This document shows positions 1 through 12,368 of a stretch of 64,000 bases of DNA, piece after piece (positions within the stretch are counted from its first letter, which is position 1; every line of letters begins with the position of its first letter). The position numbers and the translations under genes were made by a program. Source of the DNA: Oopsacas minuta (taxonomy: Eukaryota; Animalia; Porifera). The notes under the pieces were generated by a model. That model did no database searches. It was given only the letters and a program-made list of their open reading frames with translations, and was not told the origin of the DNA. The DNA lies in contig JAKMXF010000210.1 in NCBI GenBank assembly GCA_024704765.1, positions 558,001 to 622,000 on the forward strand. Direction: 5' to 3'.

Positions 1-35
1 CTATGGTATATTATTATTATTATTATTATATGTAG

Positions 36-3000
36 GTACGAGATCCTTCTACCCTCTATACCTACAATCTGTCACCACTCAGTGATGCTGTATACAGTCT
101 TGTGTCAAACTCTTATACATACAGACTGTCTATATGTTCAGCTCTCGGAGACTCTGTTAGCAGTGAGTGTACTGCAGCAGGAGCTTGTCAGACCAAGGGC
201 ACTACTTCTCACTCATTAGGAGGACCTAACTCAACTCTAACCTTTGCTAATGGGAGTCTTCAAATGAGTTATGAGGGGGGAGACACATGCAGTGGAGGTG
301 TAAAGAGGATGACACTTGTATCATTTACATGTGACCTCAATACCACTGGGATTAAAGAGGCAGGTTGTGTATAGCTAACGTATCCATGGTGTTTATACGG
401 TCTTTACAGGTAGAAGACCCAGAGGTTTCACATTGTTCTTATTTCTTCATTTTCTATACTGACAAAGCCTGCCCTTTCGAATACTTATTTGTTGACTGTT
501 CTTACACAGATACAAGCGGACACACATTTGACTTATCACCTCTCATCAGACAGTTTGATAACTGGAATGGCACAGTCACTAGTGGTATAACATCTGCTTT
601 TTCGAGTGCTAAGTTCTATTTGAATGTATGTCGACCTGTAACTAATATCCCAGGCTGTCATCCCTTGAGTTCTGCTTGTATGAGCATACAAGTTGGAGAA
701 GATATGAAATGGGTGAGTACTGGATATGATAAGAAATCAACTTCTTATATATTGTATTATATGATTTTCTTAGGCCAGCATTGGTAAGCCTAAGACAGGC
801 TTGAAGCCACTAGCGGGTAATGTTCATAACGGACTGAGAATTCTATACACAGAAGATGAGCCTCTAGATCTTGCTGGGGTGTGTGACGTTACCAAACCAC
901 AGACTGGAATTACGTTTTTGTGTCCGAAGAGCAGTGAAACTTCTAAACTTGATTATCCACGGTTGATTGGGGTGGATATCAGTGGATGTATATTCGAATT
1001 TGAGTGGTACACAAAGCTAGCCTGTACTGAAACAGGAACACCTGTGTCTACTCCATGTGCTTTCCAGGACCCTGTTAGTGGATTTGTATTCTCTTTATTG
1101 TCTCTAGAAGGTACAACACCAGTGAAATATGATGGTGAGTTATTTTATACAATAAAACATCATAGAAATGCCGTGAGCACTTGAATACTTGAAGCAAAGT
1201 TTCGCGAAGTTTCGTACCTGAAAGGATATGCGCAAGGGTGCTTATTCAGTCAGAAAATTAGCCACGTATGCTCGTGAATTACTTAATTAACTTTTGCTGT
1301 AAAATTGCGCAAAAAAAATGCCCACGACAGGGATCGAACCTATGACATTCGGCTTATTAGACCGACGCTCTAACCAACTGAGCTACGTAGACAAATATTA
1401 TATTTTAATTCTAATTCAAAACTTTGTTAGTTGTCTTTCCAGTTCATCTAGACAAAAAGACTGCCCCCGACAGGGCTCGAACCTGTGACCTTGGGCTTAT
1501 TAGACCCACGCTCTAACCGACTGAGCTACGAGGGCAGATAATATTCCTTTCCAATTCACCAATTTTTATATCATGTTACAATTACACCCTTTCTATAGAG
1601 AATACAAACGCTGACTCTCCTTTCTTCTACCTATCTATATGCTCTACTATTGACTCAGATCTCCTTCAATCTTCTATAAACCCAAAGTCTGGGGCTGTTC
1701 TTCTTTACCCAAATACTGTATCTGATGCTAAGAACTCGAGTTTAGGAGAAGCTAACTCAAACCTGTTGTACAGTGATAGTGAGCTAATACAGCTCAGATA
1801 CATTGAAGGAAGTGCATGTTCAAGTGGCAAGGTTATGTATTAATGTTCACTTCCTTCATGAATACAATTGTTATTATTCTTATCGTTTTTCAGAAATCAA
1901 CTCTAATCACCTTTGTGTGTTCACATCTTATAGCCTCGAGTGTGTCTTACATTAGCTCTCTGCCATCAGATGACACCTGTCTATTTGAGTTTGAATACAA
2001 GACAATCCTTGCTTGTCCTCCCATCACAACAGAATGTGTCATAACTTCTAATGATGGACAATTGTATGATCTTACCAGACTGAAGCAACTCTCTGGGACC
2101 GGGTTCCCTGTCTATATTTCTGGCCAGTATAGCGATATACCTCAATTATCTTCTCTACGAATTTCGGTGAGCAATGTTTAGCATACTACCGTTAGATATT
2201 CTACAATAGTTACGAGTGTATGCATTAGATATGTCAACCATTGGAAGCTGGTAGTACCGAAACATGTACTAATGGATCTGCATCTTGTCTGAGCTATGAC
2301 AATCATATATTCGATCTGGGACATGTAACAGGAGACCTACAGCTGAGTCAGCAGGGAGAACTCCAGCTGATATACTCAGGAGGTACAGGTTGTAGTAAGA
2401 GCGCGCTTACAGTGATAACTTTTCGGTGTGATCGTAGTGTTGGAGTTGGACAGCCTCTTCTTAGTCTACATAGGAACACGAGTGGGTCTTGTTACTATGA
2501 TATTGTTTGGGACTCTGAGTATGCTTGTGCAGTATTACCCAGTGAGGAATCTAACTGTGCTGTGACAGATACAGATTCAGGTATTATACAAATATTATAG
2601 AATGTTGTGAGGTGATGATCTAAATACTTTTTCGGATTCTATATACATACTCTGAACTTATAAATATTTTCCATTAACCTGTCAAGGTAATTGAGTTATT
2701 CATTACTACTATACTGGCTTGAAACCTGTTATCTTTAGATATGTTATTACAAGATTTTACAACATCCTCTTATCTTACATATTCTTCTAGGATTTGTATA
2801 TAACTTTACAAGTTTGAGTAAATTACCAGATATACACATACAACCTGACTCTACAGTTACCTCAGATGATTACAGCTTCACTATCTCTATTTGTCGTCCT
2901 ATAACATCATCATGTGGAGATGGTAGTGCTCATGCAGGAGCTTGTCAATATTCTGATAACACCCAGCATGTTACAGGTAAGATAACCTTATTACCATGAC

Positions 3001-6000
3001 AGATATAGAATTATATTTGTGTTATTATGTAGGATTATATAGCTCTACACTTATACTGAGTGATGGAGAAGTTCAGCTGGTATATTCTGGGGGTCAAGCA
3101 TGTCATAGTAACAATGTTAACAGAACAACAATAATACGTTTCTATTGTGACAAGACAGCAACTTCTCCTCGAGCTGTAGTACTACCTGAATTGACACATT
3201 GTCTCTATGAAATTATGCTATATACTAATCTAGCTTGTCCTCCTAGCCAACCTACGTTCAAATGCAATGCTAACAATCCTGATAACGGAAACACTTACGA
3301 TCTGTCTAGCTTACAACACAAAGCTTATTTTGAAGTATACTCTACAGATAGTATTGTGTACTACTTTAGTGTTTGTAACCTTCTACCTTCTCAATATGGT
3401 AATAAGGGTGTACACTGTGTTACTGGTTCTAGCTTCTGTGTGTTACATAAGAACAGCAATAATGTGAGTATTTACTAAGTAGACTGTATCGTTAATAGAA
3501 TGATGGTTACTAGTTTGTATTGTAGATATGGAAAGCTACTAATCTCGGTACAATGACACACTCCCCTTACCTACTACGGGATAATCTTCTCCTACTCTCC
3601 TACTCAACTGAGGATGCGAAATATAACACTACCGTGGGATTAGAGTGTTCTGAAGAGTCACAATCGGTTACAGATCCAATTCTTGTTTATCATAGTGCTG
3701 ACTTTTCTACGAATATATTCTCATGGCTAACGCTAGCAGCTTGTCAGAGCGAGGCATCTGACAGCTGTCAAGTTGTGCAATACAGCACTGGATTTACTAT
3801 AGACTTAGACAGCTTCAAAGCAGTTAGTATTCAGTCTCAATCTAATGACGTAGGAGATAAGTTAGCTATTTCTCTTTGTGGTGCTCTAACAGATCCTAGC
3901 TTAGGAGATTGCTATAGTAATAACAATACTGCAGTGTGTTACTCAAAGGGTAGCGATCACTATCCTATTGCTACCTCTAATACTTCTAAATGGTTCTACG
4001 GAGATGAAATAGTAGTTTCTTATTATAATGGATTTAACTGTTTGGACCAATCTTCTCCATTCAAGAGCTCTGTAGAGCTTACGTTACAATGTGGTGATAG
4101 TGAAAGCCAATCATTCGTAGAGCCTTCTAATGAGTGTGTGTATCAGGTTCTATGGCAGAGTCCTCTGTTATGTCAGTATCAAGTTGAATGCAGTGTTACA
4201 CATAACGGATATGATTACGATCTGAATTGGCTGAAAGCATATGATAGCAATTGGAGAGTTAGTTTGTCTGATAAAAAATTTCTTATTAACGTGTGTCACA
4301 ATCTATTGCCAGAAGAAACACAAACTTGTGACAGTACAGCTGCTATTTGCATGATTAGTGGTAATCATGCAGTTAATTTAGGTCAGGTTACTAATGGGCC
4401 TCAGTATGTTAGTGAAGGAGCCCTTCAGATTGAGTATAAGAATGGAGATGAGTGTGGAGATGGGACATACAGTTCTACTATTCAGTTTAATTGCCAGAAA
4501 GGAGCTGATTTAGAAGATTATATCACTCAATCAGTGAATGTAAGTTTATGCTAACACTATTTATTAAATACGTTTATTATATCTTCTTCTTGTTATAGGG
4601 GTGTCACTATATGTTCATCTGGGATACACACGTGGCTTGTGAAGATGCTGGAGGTACTATTATTGGTAAATGTGAGATAGAAGACACAGTAACAGGAGAT
4701 GTATATGATCTTAAACCTATTTTTGATGTAGGGATAATTAATGTCACTATTGAACCATTATTACAGATTATTGCTTGTCAAACTATAAAAAGGTGTGGAG
4801 GAGCGGTATGTTATGACAATTCTATTAGCTATGGTAAATATACTGATTCTAGTCTCAAGTTAGTGAATCATGTCCCTACACTTGAGTACAAGGATGGTAG
4901 TCCTTGTGGTAACAGCAAGTACAAGTCTAACATAGAATTTATTTGTAACAAGAGTGCAATAGATCACAAGTATGTAGAGCATTTGCCAATAGACGGTTGT
5001 ATACACTATTTTTTATGGCATACTCCATTAGCTTGTGCTTCTACTGTCACTGAGTGTAAACTGACAGTTGACAACCGTATAGTTGATATTACAGATTTGA
5101 ATAGGAAATTTGGTGCTTGGGAGGTTGACGTGAAAGGTGATAAGTTATACTTTAATCCTTGCGCTGGTATGAGTTCTTTCTTGATTAACACAAATCTGAA
5201 GAGTGAATCTTGTTCCTCTGACTCTCTTGCTTGTCTTCTATCGAAAGAAACTTTGCAAGAAGTAGGAGCTCTGGACACAGCTGTTCTTAAACTCAGTATA
5301 GATGGAAAATATCCTATAGAAACAGCTCGTAGCCAAACTAAATGTATTCTTGATAAATCTAAAACAAAGTCAATTCAAATACTCTTCTATCCAGGCTCTG
5401 CTATGATAGAAACTCCTGTATTCCAGGGTCTCCATCGTACAACTAGCTCATGTGTGATTAGTATTGTATTCAGTACTTCTCTAGTCGGAGAATCTTCTCC
5501 TATCAATGAACATAATGAACTTATAACCACAGAGACACCAGGAACATGTCATAATGTACTTGTGAAGCTGAATAAAAATAAGGATTATCACATAAGTAGT
5601 GATTTGAATGGAGAAACTCTTGATTTCTACGTAAATTTCTGTTCACATACAAGTGTGGAAGGTTGCAAAGAAGGTACAGTGTGTCTCATAAGGACTCAAG
5701 GTAGTAAAAAATCCGATCCAATTGCTCTCAGTTCTTATAAAAAACAGAGAATAAATGCTGTTAATAATTCTTATATAGAATTAATCATTAGTTCTGTTAA
5801 CAAGTCATGTCCATTTACAAATAAACACATCCTTACAGTATTCTATATATCTTGTTCTTCCCACTATACCGCAGTGAGTATTGAATTCGAATTCACTTCT
5901 CCTACAGGCTGTCTCTATGTATTCAATGTGTTAGCGCCTTCATCAGTTTGTCTTTCATACGAACCTACTGATGCGCCTCCTGGAGAATCTATAAATAGCG

Positions 6001-6371
6001 CTGGTAAGACTGCTGTCGTGTTTATTGTAGTCCTGATTGTTTGTTTGTTAGGGATATTCCTTGCTATCCTAATCACACTCTGCTTCTATAAGCGCTCTAC
6101 CAAGGGCGATCGCATGTTCTACAAGCTTAGAGCTTATCTCTCTCGTGTACCAGACGTACAGTTTAGATTCCAGAAGGTTGACGGATCTGAAATGGGTCAT
6201 TTGATTACTAATATGAGTGGGAGTGAGTCTGAGGATGAAACTGTATCTGAGATTGGACCTGTGGGTACAAGAATTGAGCCTGCTGGGTTGGACAAGTTTT
6301 CTATTTCTGATCCTCCTGCTGGAAAAGAGGGAGGAGATGGTTCTGAAGATGAAGATTTTATTAAACTCTGA
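36..6371 (+). CDS. IGF2R: Cation-independent mannose-6-phosphate receptor (IGF2R-like), 5'-partial, 10 exons in window
   Basis: Repeated Cys-patterned MRH/CIMR domains (e.g. C.Y.F.W.T..AC, C.V......YDL..L), one TM helix and an acidic tail ending SEDEDFIKL. Exons joined in frame by hand: 36-359, 410-712, 774-1134, 1599-1831, 1894-2166, 2229-2580, 2791-2976, 3033-3463, 3526-4539, 4599-6371. Confidence 0.88.
1319..1392 (-). tRNA. tRNA-Ile(AAT), copy 1
   Basis: Reverse complement folds into a cloverleaf: GTCTACG TA GCTC AGTTGGTTA GAGC G TCGGT CTAATAA GCCGA ATGTC ATAGG TTCGATC CCTGT CGTGGGC A. A T8 Pol III terminator follows (1311-1318). Confidence 0.93.
1462..1535 (-). tRNA. tRNA-Ile(AAT), copy 2
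   Basis: Cloverleaf GCCCTCG TA GCTC AGTCGGTTA GAGC G TGGGT CTAATAA GCCCA AGGTC ACAGG TTCGAGC CCTGT CGGGGGC A, with a T5 terminator just downstream. Confidence 0.95.
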
Positions 6372-6544: not shown

Positions 6545-7780
6545 ATGCTAGCCGAAATATACCTTTATACTATACATCGAGAGGTTGTCATGTCCTTAAC
6601 TTTGAAGCAAATTTGTCAAATCTATTATATTGCTTTCCTCCTATCTTATTCTATGAGAGTTTCCTGTGAATTCATCCCCCCATCTAATCAGATATGTATG
6701 GACGAATCTATTACTTTTGATTGTTTACTTACTGGAACTTTTCCAACTGTACAATTATTTGTCCTCAATAATACAACAATCAATTTATTTCAATTAAATA
6801 ATATTGATAGTTTCTTCGGGATAGATCTAACCCGTCTAAGTGCTACAGTTGATAATACTCTAGATCAGAATACAGGTCTGTACACATTACTCCGTGCTAA
6901 CATTACACTTGTAAATATTACAAAGGGAGATAATGGTACACTGATAGGATGTACTGCAACTACTTCTGGTAATGTTTTACTGGAAGATTCAGATACTCTT
7001 TATCTAGCTTCTCCTCCTTCTGAACTTGACATTATATTATCCCCTATACCCTCTAATTGTAGTGTTAAAGTATCATGGACTTATCCTATACAGTCTACTC
7101 TACCTATAACTGAAGAGATTACAGATTCTGTTACTAACATTATTACTTATGATCGGGTATATTTCTCGAACTTCCTAACAGCTGGACAAGATTATACTTA
7201 CACTTTAACTACCAGCAACTGTTTAGGAGACTCTATAACAGCTGATACTCAGCTGTTCTCTCTTCCTTCTCAACCTGATGCTTACACCTGTTCTGCTAAA
7301 TATGGGTCTGAAAATAGAATACTAGTTTTACAGCTGTTTGGCTATACTTCTGAGTATGCTATTGAGACTAGTTTTACATTATCTGAAGACAGTGATAATA
7401 CCATTAATTTGTCTGATACTTTTACTGAACCACGTTACTATTCTAAACAGATGTTTAATCTACCATCAACAAGAAACTATACAGTTATGTTTACATCTAT
7501 ATTGAGAGATTGTATTAGATCCCTGCAAACAACTTGTGAAACCAAACTTAATATTACTGCTAGAGTTACACCAAATCCCTCCCCTCCTCCCTTAACGAAT
7601 ACATTCGTAACCACCAGTCCTTCCACATGTAATTATATTCTCAATACCAATGACTTTAGTATATTTAATGCAATGTTCTGGGTTAGTATCATTGGGTCGA
7701 TTTTGCTGTGTTTCCTCAATATTACCGTTTGTATTAGTTTTATTTTAATCTGTCTGAACCAATTTAGACTGGTGTTTTGA
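6545..7780 (+). CDS. Ig-like + FN3-like single-pass membrane protein, paralogue 1 (essentially no cytoplasmic tail)
   Basis: Hydrophobic leader (start may be Met at 6590), Ig-like domain (C...DNGTLIGC), FN3 signature (VSW...LTAGQDYTYTL..SNCLG), Pro/Thr stalk, TM, then a stop about 7 residues later. Confidence 0.8.
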   Translation: MLAEIYLYTIHREVVMSLTLKQICQIYYIAFLLSYSMRVSCEFIPPSNQICMDESITFDCLLTGTFPTVQLFVLNNTTINLFQLNNIDSFFGIDLTRLSATVDNTLDQNTGLYTLLRANITLVNITKGDNGTLIGCTATTSGNVLLEDSDTLYLASPPSELDIILSPIPSNCSVKVSWTYPIQSTLPITEEITDSVTNIITYDRVYFSNFLTAGQDYTYTLTTSNCLGDSITADTQLFSLPSQPDAYTCSAKYGSENRILVLQLFGYTSEYAIETSFTLSEDSDNTINLSDTFTEPRYYSKQMFNLPSTRNYTVMFTSILRDCIRSLQTTCETKLNITARVTPNPSPPPLTNTFVTTSPSTCNYILNTNDFSIFNAMFWVSIIGSILLCFLNITVCISFILICLNQFRLVF

Positions 7781-7887
7781 TACGTTTGTATATTTTGAGC
7801 ATTTTAAAGCTATCTTTGTATTATAATTTCAGCTAATCAATTGAATTGAATATATTTAATGAGTGACTTATATATTTAGCTTTTCCA

Positions 7888-9237
7888 ATGAATAACCTAC
7901 TCTTACTTCTACTCTTATTATCCCTCTTGCTATGTTATATGAGAGTTTCCTGTGAATTCATCCCTCCATCTAATCAGATATGTATGGACGAATCTATTAC
8001 TTTTGATTGTTTACTTCCTGGAACTTTTCCAACTATACAATTATTTGTCATCAATAATACAACAGTCAATTTATTTCAAATAAATAATATTGATAGTTTC
8101 TTCGGGATAGATCTAACCCGTCTAAGTGCTACAGTTGATAATGCTCTAGATCAGAATACAGGTCTGTACACAGTACTCCGTGCTAACATTACACTTGTAA
8201 ATATTACAAAGGGAGATAATGGTACACTGATAGGATGTACTGCAACTACTTCTGGTAATGTTTTACTGGAAGATTCAGATACTCTTTATCTAGCTTCTCC
8301 TCCTTCTGAACCTGACATTATATTATCCCCTATACCCTCTAATTGTAGTGTTAAAGTATCATGGACTTATCCTATACAGTCTACTCTACCTATAACTGAA
8401 GAGATTACAGATTCTGTTACTAACATTATTACTTATGATCGGGTATATTTCTCGAACTTCCTAACAGCTGGACAAGATTATACTTACACTTTAACTTCCA
8501 GCAACTGTTTAGGAGACTCTATAACAGCTGATACTCAGCTGTTCTCTCTTCCTTCTCAACCTGATGCTTACACCTGTTCTGCTGAATATGGGTCTGAAAA
8601 TAGAATGCTAGTTTTACAGCTGTTGGGCTATACTTCTGAGTATGCTATTGAGACTAGTTTTACTTTATCTGAAGACAGTGATAATACCACTAATTTGTCT
8701 GATACTTTTACTGAACCACGTTACTATTCTAAACAGATGTTTGATCTACCATCAACAAGAAACTATACAGTTGTGTTTACATCTGTATTGAGAGATTGTA
8801 TTGGATCCCTGCAAACAACTTGTGAAGCCAAACTTATTATTACTGGTATAGTTACACCAACTTCCCCCCCTATTCCAACACCTACTCCCTCCATGACTAT
8901 TCCAACTCAGAGTCCACAGGATTACCTAGTATACATCATAATAGCAGTAGTTCTCTTCCTACTGTTATTATTCCTATCTTTTGTTATAATCTTGCTTACT
9001 TGTCTACTAAACAGAGGGAAAATATTCAGAAATAGAACTTCTCCTCAGAATGCTAAGGGTTTTTCTAAGCGGGTTGCAGCTCCCGCGAAAATCTCTGATT
9101 CAAATGAAAACGGGGATGAGCTAAATTACCTAAAACCAGAATTTGGTTCCAATCCTAAGAAACCTAATGCTCCTATCCCTAAGACTCTGTATGCAGATAT
9201 TAAGCATATGCCTTCTGACTACGCTACCCTACAGTAG
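7888..9237 (+). CDS. Ig-like + FN3-like receptor, paralogue 2, with ITSM/ITIM-like cytoplasmic tail
   Basis: Signal peptide MNNLLLLLLLLSLLLCY, the same ectodomain, TM YIIIAVVLFLLLLFLSFVIILLTCLL, and a tail of about 75 aa with LNYLKP, TLYADI and SDYATL. Confidence 0.88.
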   Translation: MNNLLLLLLLLSLLLCYMRVSCEFIPPSNQICMDESITFDCLLPGTFPTIQLFVINNTTVNLFQINNIDSFFGIDLTRLSATVDNALDQNTGLYTVLRANITLVNITKGDNGTLIGCTATTSGNVLLEDSDTLYLASPPSEPDIILSPIPSNCSVKVSWTYPIQSTLPITEEITDSVTNIITYDRVYFSNFLTAGQDYTYTLTSSNCLGDSITADTQLFSLPSQPDAYTCSAEYGSENRMLVLQLLGYTSEYAIETSFTLSEDSDNTTNLSDTFTEPRYYSKQMFDLPSTRNYTVVFTSVLRDCIGSLQTTCEAKLIITGIVTPTSPPIPTPTPSMTIPTQSPQDYLVYIIIAVVLFLLLLFLSFVIILLTCLLNRGKIFRNRTSPQNAKGFSKRVAAPAKISDSNENGDELNYLKPEFGSNPKKPNAPIPKTLYADIKHMPSDYATLQ

Positions 9238-9546
9238 TTATGCCTTTGTACTTGTTAGTGGTTTTATTCTTATCTAAGGTATTAATTCAGCTTAAATCTA
9301 ATCCTGCTGGTATGACCTATTAGTAATTATCCTCCCCCTTCTCTACTAAATGGATTTATATTGAATTGTTTATTTCTTTACTTTCTTTGTATAATATCTA
9401 GTGAACTGTTTACCTTATATAACTTGTATGTATAGGATATGTAGTATTTGTTTGTTGTTTTGTTTACTTTATAATAATCATACTATCCAGAATTATTTGC
9501 ACAACCAAACAATTCATATCTTCGTTCATTTTCTTACTAGTTAGCT

Positions 9547-9650
9547 ATGGCTAGCACTACATGTCCACATGTAACTAACCAAGGTCTAGAGATGGATCTT
9601 GGTAACTTATCGGCTACTGACATAGATTTCCATCTAACTAATGAGGGAGG
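9547..9650 (+). pseudogene. RRS1: Duplicated 5' fragment of RRS1 (about 35 codons) at the duplication junction
   Basis: Matches 11234-11337, then switches abruptly to the sequence of 7706 onward. Confidence 0.9.
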
Positions 9651-9831
9651 CTGTGTTTCCTCAATATTACCGTTTGTATTAGTTTTATTTTAATCTGTCT
9701 GAACCAATTTAGACTCGTGTTTTGATACGTTTGTATATTTTGAGCATTTTAAAGCTATCTTTGTATTATAATTTTAGCTAATCAATTGAATTGAATATAT
9801 TTATGACTGATTTATTTATTTAGCTATTCAA

Positions 9832-10800
9832 ATGAATAACTTACTCTTACTTCTACTCTTATTATCCCTCTTGCTATGTTATATGAGAGTTTCCTGTGAA
9901 TTCATCCCTCCATCTAATCAGATATGTATGGACGAATCTATTACTTTTGATTGTTTACTTCCTGGAACTTTTCTGCTTGTACAAGTATTTATCGTCAATT
10001 CTACACTAGTCAATTTATTTCAAATAAATAATATTGATAGTTTCTTCGGGATAGATCTAACCCGTCTAAGTGCTACAGTTGATAATACTCTAGATCAGAA
10101 TACAGGTCTGTACACAGTACTCCGTGCTAACATTACACTTATTGATATTACCAAGGAAGATAATGGTACACTGATAGGATGTCAAGCGACTAATTCTGAT
10201 AATGATTTAATTGAAGTTTCAGATACTCTTTATCTAGCTTCTCCTCCTGAACTTGACATTATATTATCCCCTATACCCTCTAATTGTAGTGTTAAAGTAT
10301 CATGGACTTATCCTATACAGTCCACTCTACCTATAACTGAAGAGATTACAGATTCTGTTACTAACATTATTACTTATGATCGGGTATATTTCTCGAACTT
10401 CCTAACAGCTGGACAAGATTATACTTACACTTTAACTTCCAGCAACTGTTTAGGAGACTCTATAACAGCTGATACTCAGCTGTTCTCTCTTCCTTCTCAA
10501 CCTGATGCTTACACCTGTTCTGCTGAATATGGGTCTGAAAATAGAATGCTAGTTTTACAGCTGTTGGGCTATACTTCTGAGTATGCTATTGAGACTAGTT
10601 TTACTTTATCTGAAGACAGTGATAATACCACTAATTTGTCTGATACTTTTACTGAACCACGTTACTATTCTAAACAGATGTTTGATCTACCATCAACAAG
10701 AAACTATACAGTTGTGTTTACATCTATATTGAGAAATTGTATTGGATCCCTGCAAACAACTTGTGAAACCAAACTTAATATTACTGCTTTAGTTCTATGA
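9832..10800 (+). CDS. Ig-like + FN3-like protein, paralogue 3, stops before the TM (secreted form or pseudogene)
   Basis: Signal peptide and full ectodomain. TGA at 10798-10800 precedes the stalk, and the downstream TM/tail region is mostly deleted. Confidence 0.7.
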   Translation: MNNLLLLLLLLSLLLCYMRVSCEFIPPSNQICMDESITFDCLLPGTFLLVQVFIVNSTLVNLFQINNIDSFFGIDLTRLSATVDNTLDQNTGLYTVLRANITLIDITKEDNGTLIGCQATNSDNDLIEVSDTLYLASPPELDIILSPIPSNCSVKVSWTYPIQSTLPITEEITDSVTNIITYDRVYFSNFLTAGQDYTYTLTSSNCLGDSITADTQLFSLPSQPDAYTCSAEYGSENRMLVLQLLGYTSEYAIETSFTLSEDSDNTTNLSDTFTEPRYYSKQMFDLPSTRNYTVVFTSILRNCIGSLQTTCETKLNITALVL

Positions 10801-11233
10801 ACTCCCTCCCTTACCTCCATGACTACAAACACAGGTTTACCACCTCAGAGTCTACCGTATTACCTAACATACATCATAATAGCAGTAGTACTCTATGCCT
10901 TCTGACTACGCTACCCTACAGTAGTTATGCCTTTGTACTTGTTAGTGGTTTTATTCTTATCTAAGGTATTAATTCAGCTTAAATCTAATCCTGCTGGTAT
11001 AACCTATTAGTAATTATCCTCCCCCTTCTCTACTAAATGGATTTATATTGAATTGTTTATTTCTTTACTTTCTTTGTATAATATCTAGTGAACTGTTTAC
11101 CTTATATAACTTGTATGTATAGGATATGTAGTATTTGTTTGTTGTTTTGTTTACTTTATAATAATCATACTATCCAGGATTATTTGCACAACCAAACAAT
11201 TCATATCTTCGTTCATTTTCTTACTAGTTAGCT

Positions 11234-12368
11234 ATGGCTAGCACTACATGTCCACATGTAACTAACCAAGGTCTAGAGATGGATCTTGGTAACTTATCGG
11301 CTACTGACATAGATTTCCATCTAACTAATGAGGGAGGTGTTCCTAATGAGCAGGAGTTATTGAACAGATCACAACAATGTGTTCAAACAATGTTCAGTCA
11401 GCTGTCTAAACTTCCTCACGAGAGAGACGGACATCTGTCAGTTGTCAAACTACCTGAACCTAAAACCCAGCTTCCAAGATATCAACCTCTTCCTCAACCT
11501 AAGCCTCTGACTAGATGGGAGAGATATTCCAAAGAGAAGGGAGTGAGTAATAAGAAGAGGAGTAGGATGGTGTGGGATGAAGGAGGACAGGAATGGAAAC
11601 CAAGATGGGGATACAAGAAGGCTAGTAAGAGACCAGAGGATCAGTGGTTGGTTGAGGTAAGTACTAAGTTATTACTTATATATTAGATTAATTCTATCAA
11701 TTATTATGCTATTAGATTCCAGACCAGAAGGATCCATATGAAGATTACTTTGAGAAGGCTAAAGAAGAGAAGAGAGAGAGGGTAGCTAAAAATGAGTACC
11801 AGAGAGTGAGGAACCTTATGAGAGACCATGAGGGTAAAATTAAAGCTCCACACCTCCTCACAAATCAGGGACAGAAAGGAGGAAGGAAGGAACTTAATAT
11901 GATGACTAGCCTTGCAAAGGTTTCTACTCCATCTCTTGGAAAGTAAGTATTAGCTATATACACGTAGTTGTGATAATATTTATCTTCTGATATATTTATA
12001 GGTTTAGTGAGAAAGTTAAAGGAGAACCTAAATCCATCCGTGGGCAGAAGAGAAGGTTTGATCCTGTGTTAGGAGATTTAAAATCAGAACGAGACAAACA
12101 GTTGAAACTCTTAGAAACAATATCAAGAGATAAACCCATAGTGAATGTTAGTAAAGCAGTCAACAGGTATATTGATAAGAAACAGAAGTCTAATAGACAG
12201 ACAGAGGATAATTATGATAATGAAGATACACAACCAAGACATAAAAGTAAGTTTGGTAAAAAGATGAAAGGGAAAACTCCCTTGAAAACGAAACTACCTA
12301 AAGCAGGTAAGAAAGTTGAGAAAAAACTGAAAAGATTGCAACAGACGAAAAGAAGAATGAAACTTTAG
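11234..12368 (+). CDS. RRS1: Ribosome biogenesis regulatory protein RRS1, 3 exons
   Basis: Motifs LPRYQPLPQPKPLTRWERY, WKPRWGYK, KNEYQRVRN, STPSLGKF. Exons 11234-11656, 11716-11942, 12002-12368; both 59-bp GT-AG introns keep frame. Confidence 0.95.

Follow-up and report, generated by a model that had tools for sequence, protein, structure and literature searches.

Merohomogenization has been described for the paired opposing leukocyte receptors KLRC/NKG2, KLRB, Ly49 and PIR (Fossum et al. 2011, PMC3210942), and comparable paired receptors are known in CEACAM1/CEACAM3 (PMC2832619, PMC5112662) and Siglec-11/16 (PMC5701461). Here we describe three tandem genes for putative surface proteins in the glass sponge Oopsacas minuta that show a similar pattern. 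The genes are located in a window of 64,000 nucleotides (nt), which corresponds to positions 558,001 to 622,000 on the forward strand of contig JAKMXF010000210.1 (assembly GCA_024704765.1). All features are on the + strand, and coordinates refer to this window. The second and third genes (copies 2 and 3) are nearly identical except for four short, strongly diverged tracts, some of which an earlier note on this DNA had attributed to diversifying selection or to segmental gene conversion at a ligand-binding face. We favor, with a probability of about 0.7, a mosaic history in which gene conversion among tandem copies homogenizes the ectodomain, leaving the patches as unconverted remnants of an old lineage of the type that carries a cytoplasmic tail. 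Mosaic gene conversion among tandem receptor genes, the cause we assign to the pattern, is already known as a process; the family in which it is seen here is new and sponge-specific. Our literature search found no paper describing the family, and the genome paper does not mention it.

The sponge locus and the vertebrate paired receptors are alike in several ways. In both, linked genes join a near-identical ectodomain to different membrane and cytoplasmic modules, an arrangement that is syntenic in five sponge species. Ectodomains group by species and signaling modules group by type, and mosaic conversion tracts are present, sometimes with non-functional copies. However, the sponge family is specific to hexactinellids, its architecture is one immunoglobulin (Ig) domain plus two fibronectin type III (FN3)-like domains, and its tail-less partner carries no charged transmembrane (TM) residue, mostly a conserved Asn only. 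An immune role, a shared ligand and opposing signals would be putative for the sponge proteins.

A second relevant system is the Hydractinia Alr complex (PMC9546547). It likewise consists of a tandem cluster of divergent Ig-superfamily genes in an early-branching animal, with a variable membrane-distal V/I-like domain and with tails resembling immunoreceptor tyrosine-based inhibitory or activation motifs (ITIM/ITAM). Whereas Alr is an invertebrate histocompatibility complex, the sponge locus has only two to three copies, its synteny is kept across species rather than expanded, and it has no known allorecognition phenotype or polymorphism. The order of one Ig domain followed by two FN3 domains is also found in gp130, IL-11R-alpha, CNTFR-alpha and contactin/NCAM, but this likeness is confined to architecture, with TM-scores of 0.2-0.3, identities of 10-14%, and no WSXWS-type motif noted.

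The three intron-less open reading frames (ORFs) occupy the space between a mannose-6-phosphate-receptor-like gene and an RRS1 gene. Copy 1 (6590-7780), the tail-less form, encodes its own signal peptide and an Ig-like domain (D1), followed by two FN3-like domains and a stalk. Its membrane anchor (FNAMFWVSIIGSILLCFLNI...) is distinct, and its cytoplasmic tail is almost absent. This anchor type is kept in the tail-less copies of four other species. Copy 2 (7888-9237), defined from the ORF list, an AlphaFold model and fold matches, is the full-length tailed form of 449 amino acids. Its signal peptide is followed by D1 (approximately residues 30-135), the FN3-like domains D2 and D3, a Pro/Thr stalk and a TM helix (344-377), and its tail bears three Tyr motifs, NYLKP, TLYADI and SDYATL.

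Copy 3 (9832-10800), which is supported by the ORF list, alignment and read contigs, is a truncated form of 322 amino acids that comprises only the signal peptide and D1-D3 and ends inside the stalk at an in-frame TGA (10798-10800). We rejected a sense reading of this TGA, since copy 1 also terminates with TGA. Copy 3 also lacks the counterpart of positions 8956-9206 of copy 2 (251 nt), which encode most of the TM helix and the entire cytoplasmic tail. This deletion, whose junction lies at 10893-10894 in the alignment of the copies, shifts the frame. With anchor and tail lost, copy 3 would be either a decaying copy or, at most, a gene for a secreted ectodomain.

Copies 2 and 3 differ by 0-1.3% in their flanks and most of their coding sequence, and by 15-35% in four short tracts, one in the 5′ untranslated region (UTR), two in D1 and one in the stalk. 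Along successive segments, the substitution density is 1.3%, 15%, 0%, 35%, 0.8%, 19.5%, 0.4%, 21.8% and 0.5%. Tract A (9805-9841, matching approximately 7861-7900 in copy 2) spans the 5′ UTR and start codon region with 6 substitutions in 40 positions (15%) and one indel, and is non-coding except for one synonymous change in codon 4. Tract B, or patch B (9974-10007; copy 2 8030-8063), covers residues 48-59 and differs at 12 of 34 nt (35%). Tract C, or patch C (10141-10217; copy 2 8197-8273), covers residues 104-129 and differs at 15 of 77 nt (19.5%). Tract D (10726-10893; copy 2 8785-8955) extends from the end of D3 through the stalk, where 36 of 165 nt differ (21.8%) in addition to indels. It includes the TGA of copy 3, and its first part (10726-10787) resembles copy 1. 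Among the 903 positions that can be aligned in all three copies, 28 are specific to copy 3; a single 40-nt window holds 11 of these, and a single 80-nt window holds 15. Such clustering was matched by none of 20,000 permutations (p<5e-5). The clustering of differences between copies 2 and 3 is genuine and has strong statistical support, and copy 3 is a mosaic.

Much of the earlier note's description was reproduced by these alignments. The 3′ flank is nearly identical, as the note had stated (2 substitutions in 443 aligned nt), and so is the FN3 region (2 substitutions and one 3-nt indel over copy 2 positions 8274-8784). Its first patch is our patch B, for which the 8 changed codons and 12 substitutions were recovered. 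For its second patch, our patch C, the 9 changed residues and 2 purely synonymous codons hold and the substitutions number 15, but the number of synonymous differences by the Nei-Gojobori method is 4 rather than 2. Its proposal that differences between copies 1 and 2 cluster in the first patch is weak, as it relates to 5 of 22 differences in 64 nt chosen post hoc. Tracts A and D, and the stop and deletion of copy 3, are beyond what the note had observed.

If copy 2 was duplicated very recently and the loops of copy 3 that resemble complementarity-determining regions (CDRs) then underwent rapid replacement, diversifying selection in situ could produce such patches. The 11 non-synonymous changes versus 1 synonymous change in patch B agree with this proposal, as does the occurrence of changes in the BC and FG loops of the Ig-like domain. 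However, synonymous and non-coding differences cluster in the same places. Synonymous differences between copies 2 and 3 number 5 in approximately 32 synonymous sites within the patches versus 2 in approximately 193 elsewhere (Fisher p=7e-4). In addition, the four diverged tracts include two that either lie outside coding sequence or contain a stop codon, and the non-coding tracts are as diverged as the coding patches.

We also carried out the comparison of non-synonymous (dN) and synonymous (dS) rates that the earlier note had named as a check. Patch B has 11 non-synonymous differences (Nd) and 1 synonymous difference (Sd), for a dN/dS ratio (omega) of 4.8 (p=0.24, Nei-Gojobori), whereas patch C has a ratio of 0.87. 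The two pooled yield Nd=22, Sd=5 and an omega of approximately 1.5 (Fisher p=0.46). Thus, dN significantly above dS was not found in patch B, in patch C or in both pooled. Conservative I/V/L swaps in strands account for 6 of the 17 replacements, and copy 3 is truncated by its stop codon and deletion. Diversifying selection at the patches, as suggested by the note, is unproven and in part contradicted, given the co-clustering of synonymous and non-coding differences, an omega that is not significantly different from 1, and the truncation of copy 3.

The age of the patches was assessed by polarizing their 27 differences against ten sequences from four other glass-sponge species (loci L015-L018, hereafter species A to D). 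The outgroup base is found in copy 2 at 12 sites and in copy 3 at 13, with 2 ties. Because copy 3 carries the ancestral base at as many as 13 sites versus 12 for copy 2, its branch has not been accelerated (Tajima-type relative-rate chi-square = 0.04). For example, copy 3 shares TCT at codon 57 with 3 of the 4 outgroup species, whereas copies 1 and 2 have AAT there, and it shares GAA at codon 109 with all 10 outgroup sequences, whereas copies 1 and 2 have GGA. Had copy 3 mutated away from a copy-2 template, at least 13 outgroup matches among 15 sites would be expected with a probability of only 3e-5. This polarization is decisive against fresh hypervariation, and selection acting in situ after a recent duplication is essentially refuted. 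A deaminase-like hypermutation process was likewise dropped, since the patch changes have a mixed spectrum, with many at A, and half of them are ancestral states.

Distances between sequences point in the same direction. In the patch codons, copies 2 and 3 are separated by 0.237, and O. minuta is separated from species A by 0.298. In the remaining ectodomain, the corresponding values are 0.010 and 0.297. Because the patch distance approaches that between species while the rest stands at 0.010, the patches are old sequence in a young backbone, and their divergence is symmetrical. The stalk of copy 3 also appears by inspection to be closer than that of copy 2 to the outgroup anchors (LPYYLTYIIIAVVL versus the outgroups' LPPYITYIIIAV). 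Moreover, at codons 142, 300 and 314 copy 1 has derived bases in common with copy 3 but not with copy 2, which indicates that exchange involves all three copies. Together with the co-clustering of synonymous and non-coding changes and the 13 versus 12 outgroup states, these shared codons strongly support segmental gene conversion, the other cause that the earlier note had put forward.

The preferred model can be outlined as follows. The three genes would constitute a tandem family of Ig-FN3-FN3 surface proteins in which repeated, short-tract gene conversion keeps the ectodomains near identical, with concerted evolution limited to the extracellular part. Copy 3 combines a backbone and flanks that are approximately 99.5% identical to copy 2 with a segment near the end of D3 that matches copy 1, and this backbone would reflect very recent homogenization or duplication. 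The 5′ UTR tract, patch B, patch C and the stalk would have escaped overwriting and would all stem from one deeply diverged tailed-type lineage. Both lineages changed at about equal rates, with synonymous and non-coding sites changing along with the others. We infer, rather than observe, that conversion and not another recombination route made the mosaic, and in which direction it acted.

Evidence that this process is not restricted to one species comes from the other glass sponges. Homologues were identified only in a handful of ENA assemblies, with no sequence relatives outside glass sponges (Hexactinellida). The four other species carry the same gene order, which is a gene resembling the cation-independent mannose-6-phosphate receptor (CIMR), one or more tail-less copies, a tailed copy, RRS1, NADPH oxidase and ELP1. 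Thus, the pair of tail-less and tailed genes is syntenic in five glass-sponge assemblies (window 6545-10925 and L015-L018). Across the five species, the ectodomains of linked copies share 85-97% identity within a species and 51-71% between species. Scores for the C-terminal modules are 65-138 among tail-less forms, 181-433 among tailed forms, and 25-48 across types. Therefore, anchor and tail modules cluster by type across species, ectodomains cluster by species, and concerted evolution is family-wide.

The tailed forms carry the motif (E/D)EL(H/N)Y(I/L)xP in all five species and TxYxD(I/L) in four of five (TEYAAM in species C), and O. minuta has SDYATL as an additional motif. By inspection only, these Tyr motifs fit the patterns YxxP, immunoreceptor tyrosine-based switch motif (ITSM) and ITIM/ITAM. 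The last two tyrosines of O. minuta (YADI-x6-YATL) are, again by inspection, compatible with an ITAM as well as with an ITSM plus ITIM. The tail-less anchors conform to FW(V/I)...LLxxLN, and their membrane span is devoid of K/R/D/E but retains, in most cases, an Asn.

In other species too, linked copies show synonymous divergence that is patchy, but at places different from those in O. minuta. In species A, for example, the proportion of synonymous differences (pS) is 0.33 in D3 versus 0.04 in D2. The hot spots of paralog difference coincide poorly across species, with Spearman coefficients versus O. minuta of -0.11 to 0.42 and only species D reaching p=0.02. Residues 43-62, which surround patch B, are a recurrent site of difference, seen in O. 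minuta and species D and to a lesser degree in species A, whereas patch C is not recurrent. Additional copies are present as well. Species D has a broken middle copy with a tailed-type 5′ end (L018 6278-7608; ORF of 215 amino acids, 1.3 kb of homology at 91%), and the middle copy of species B joins a tailed-type signal peptide to a tail-less anchor. Copies at the orthologous locus are repeatedly born, shuffled and lost.

Several observations weigh against unconverted relics as the explanation, beginning with the structure of the duplication. Both units consist of an upstream region, one of the receptor copies and a 3′ flank, followed by RRS1 sequence. The first unit (7705-9650) contains copy 2 and ends with the initial 104 nt of the RRS1 ORF (9547-9650). 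The second unit (9651-11337) contains copy 3 and runs into the intact RRS1 gene, which starts at 11234. By alignment of the copies, the two units form a simple tandem duplication in which the first 104 nt of the RRS1 ORF are joined to the gene's upstream region, and the junction (GGGAGG|CTGTGTTTCC) has 1 nt of microhomology. The flanks of the units, including the 104-nt RRS1 fragment, are approximately 99.5% identical, and the junction looks like one simple event. If the duplication is old, then conversion must have swept the non-coding flanks too. If it is recent, then an old donor is required, and the assembly contains none. Moreover, patch B has an omega of 4.8 (Nd=11 versus Sd=1), and linked copies of species D, and less clearly those of species A, are also different in the BC-C-C′ stretch. 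This amino-acid excess and this recurrence make selection on the BC-C-C′ stretch possible. Finally, the data derive from one individual or sample, in the form of contigs. Copy 3 may have begun as an old paralog and then been overwritten over most of its length, or it may be a recent duplicate into which old sequence was brought.

The latter history could have involved a diverged paralog, since lost or unassembled, that supplied four short conversion tracts to a recent duplicate of copy 2. The simple junction and the 99.5% identical flanks are readily accommodated, and in other species extra, chimeric and broken copies have appeared and disappeared at the orthologous locus. However, four separate tracts from one vanished source are required, and our searches found no donor. 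The O. minuta assembly (61.46 Mb, 365 contigs) agrees with the genome paper (PMC10280926), and within these 61 Mb a DNA search with domain 1 of copy 3 matched the three copies only. The exact strings of patches B and C, with up to 3 mismatches allowed, are unique in the assembly. A protein search recovered only a distant paralog with 41% identity on contig C324, whose patch sequence is unrelated. We consider a recent import of this kind very unlikely.

Some more distant relatives were encountered in the course of these searches. The paralog in O. minuta (L004; contig C324, 125-562) is 41% identical over the Ig domain. A protein from another assembly (P0017), of the tail-less type and 412 amino acids in length, represents a distant paralog with 36% identity. 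A protein of 1779 amino acids (P0018) contains 16 matches to the first FN3-like domain.

Another origin for the old patches could be allelic. Copies 2 and 3 might represent divergent alleles of a single tailed gene that were placed in tandem by one unequal, microhomology-mediated exchange between homologous chromosomes. The patches would then be ancient lineages maintained by balancing selection, as at histocompatibility loci, and population polymorphism would be expected. A single event would cover the identical flanks, the simple junction and four old tracts of similar 15-35% divergence. Old patches suit long-lived alleles, synonymous sites beside balanced sites are expected to diverge, and amino-acid changes are in excess in patch B. 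However, a 5′ UTR and a stop-bearing stalk are not obvious targets of balancing selection, omega is not significantly different from 1, and low heterozygosity is expected in the cave population that was sequenced (PMC10280926). Contigs specific to copy 2 and to copy 3 also occur at approximately the word depth of single-copy flanks in 2 of 3 runs, although this is weak evidence. Overall, the allelic origin is the main rival explanation but seems to us unlikely.

A run search returned four runs of the assembly's own sample and one relative with approximately 93% identity, and no RNA run. The read support is in the form of Logan contigs, with three runs of that sample examined for copy 3. A short-protein search with copy-3 D1 for fragments in other samples gave no match. 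In the three runs, contigs match patch B of copy 3 (9910-10140) and its stop and deletion junction (10759-10923) without any difference. Because Logan contigs are chimeric between copies, alleles cannot be read from them, and one contig of 777 nt joins patch B of copy 3 to patch C of copies 1 and 2. Such chimerism raises the concern that copy 3 is itself a mis-joined haplotype or a chimeric consensus created during assembly. However, its specific contigs recur unchanged in all three runs, and copy-specific contigs have a depth near that of single-copy flanks, with shared segments at approximately three-fold depth. The chance that copy 3 is an assembly artefact is therefore very small in our judgment.

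The positions of the patches within the protein were examined by using structure models. Pfam gave no significant domain in the copies, with the best match being PF00047 in copy 1 only (E=0.11, 13.3 bits versus a cut-off of 21.8). The AlphaFold model of copy 2 has a signal helix, three beta domains and the TM helix at 344-377, and whole-ectodomain fold matches are of the Ig + FN3 + FN3 type, such as gp130 D1-D3, IL-11R-alpha, contactin and NCAM2 (Foldseek E 4e-11 to 1e-9). When D1 is modeled alone (AlphaFold pLDDT 89), the best VIA-align match is OPCML Ig1 (Z 9.4, root-mean-square deviation 2.1 over 93 residues), followed by DIP, NCAM Ig1, antibody V domains and nectin D1. C41 falls in strand 37-47 and C117 in strand 114-120, as a B-F strand cysteine pair with both invariant or nearly so, and D110-N-G-T-L-I-G-C117 has the canonical spacing of the D-x-G-x-Y-x-C-like motif before the F-strand Cys. 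The model thus places D1 in the immunoglobulin superfamily as an I/V-set type domain, by predicted fold and not by sequence.

On the DSSP strands of these models (37-47, 52-55, 58-60, 93-103, 114-120 and 126-132), the changes in patch B map to the end of the BC loop (48-50), strand C (52, 54, 55), the CC′ turn (57) and C′ (59). Those in patch C map to the end of strand E (104), the EF loop (105, 109), strand F after Cys117 (118), the CDR3-equivalent FG loop (121, 123, 125) and strand G (127, 129). Both patches are on the G-F-C-C′ sheet. The CDR-like placement given in the earlier note is roughly right for the BC and FG loops, but changes also occur at the other end of the domain (the CC′ turn and EF loop) and at the adjacent strand positions 54 and 55. 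The 6 conservative I/V/L swaps among the 17 replacements, and the changes in strands and in loops at the membrane-proximal end, are part of contiguous stretches. Because the changes fill such stretches, DNA tracts fit better than a selected surface.

These data nevertheless allow a functional variant of the preferred model, in which the relics are not accidental and an alternative binding face, made up of BC-C-C′ and the FG hairpin, is maintained by selection in copy 3 as a secreted form without anchor, next to the receptor with tyrosine motifs and the tail-less partner. We regard this idea as rather improbable. If true, glass sponges would have a system of receptor, partner and soluble decoy or variant that evolves by ectodomain-restricted conversion like that of vertebrate paired immune receptors, and that could serve self/non-self or microbe recognition.

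Templated diversification from pseudogene donors, as in gene conversion of chicken psi-V genes and in the antigenic-variation cassettes of pathogens, offers another parallel. The similarity includes a truncated, silent-looking copy 3 with alternative sequence exactly at parts of its intact neighbor's binding domain, and active conversion at the locus. However, the sponge has one such copy, and transfer has been mostly into copy 3, not out of it.

What resembled antibody-style hypervariability in one of the earliest-branching animals is now a clear example of mosaic gene conversion. This serves as a caution that clustered amino-acid differences between near-identical duplicates may be old unconverted sequence, not selection. 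For comparative immunology, concerted evolution of the ectodomain only, so far known from vertebrate paired immune receptors, occurs in at least five glass-sponge genomes.

Some additional features of the locus were noted. The public gene model LOD99_2497 (P0001, 592 amino acids; window 7200-9237) uses a predicted intron to link all of copy 2 to the 3′ portion of copy 1. It is probably a fusion artefact, because copies 1 and 2 have separate signal peptides and stop codons. The duplication also created a small chimeric ORF (9547-9699), in which the first 35 RRS1 codons are in frame with 13 codons from the end of the copy 1 anchor region, followed by a stop.

A second copy of the RRS1 gene, together with 192 nt of upstream sequence (window 11042-12197), is found with 93% identity on the minus strand of contig C310 (L019 373-1500). 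This homology begins where read contigs had a loose end (9355/11042). The loose end was considered as a trail to an Ig donor and was dropped, since it led only to this RRS1 copy. Upstream of the three copies, window positions 1-6371 hold a long array of CIMR repeats that is split over several six-frame ORFs, the last of which encodes 586 amino acids with a TM segment and an acidic tail. The array is probably one multi-exon gene for a cation-independent mannose-6-phosphate-receptor-like protein.

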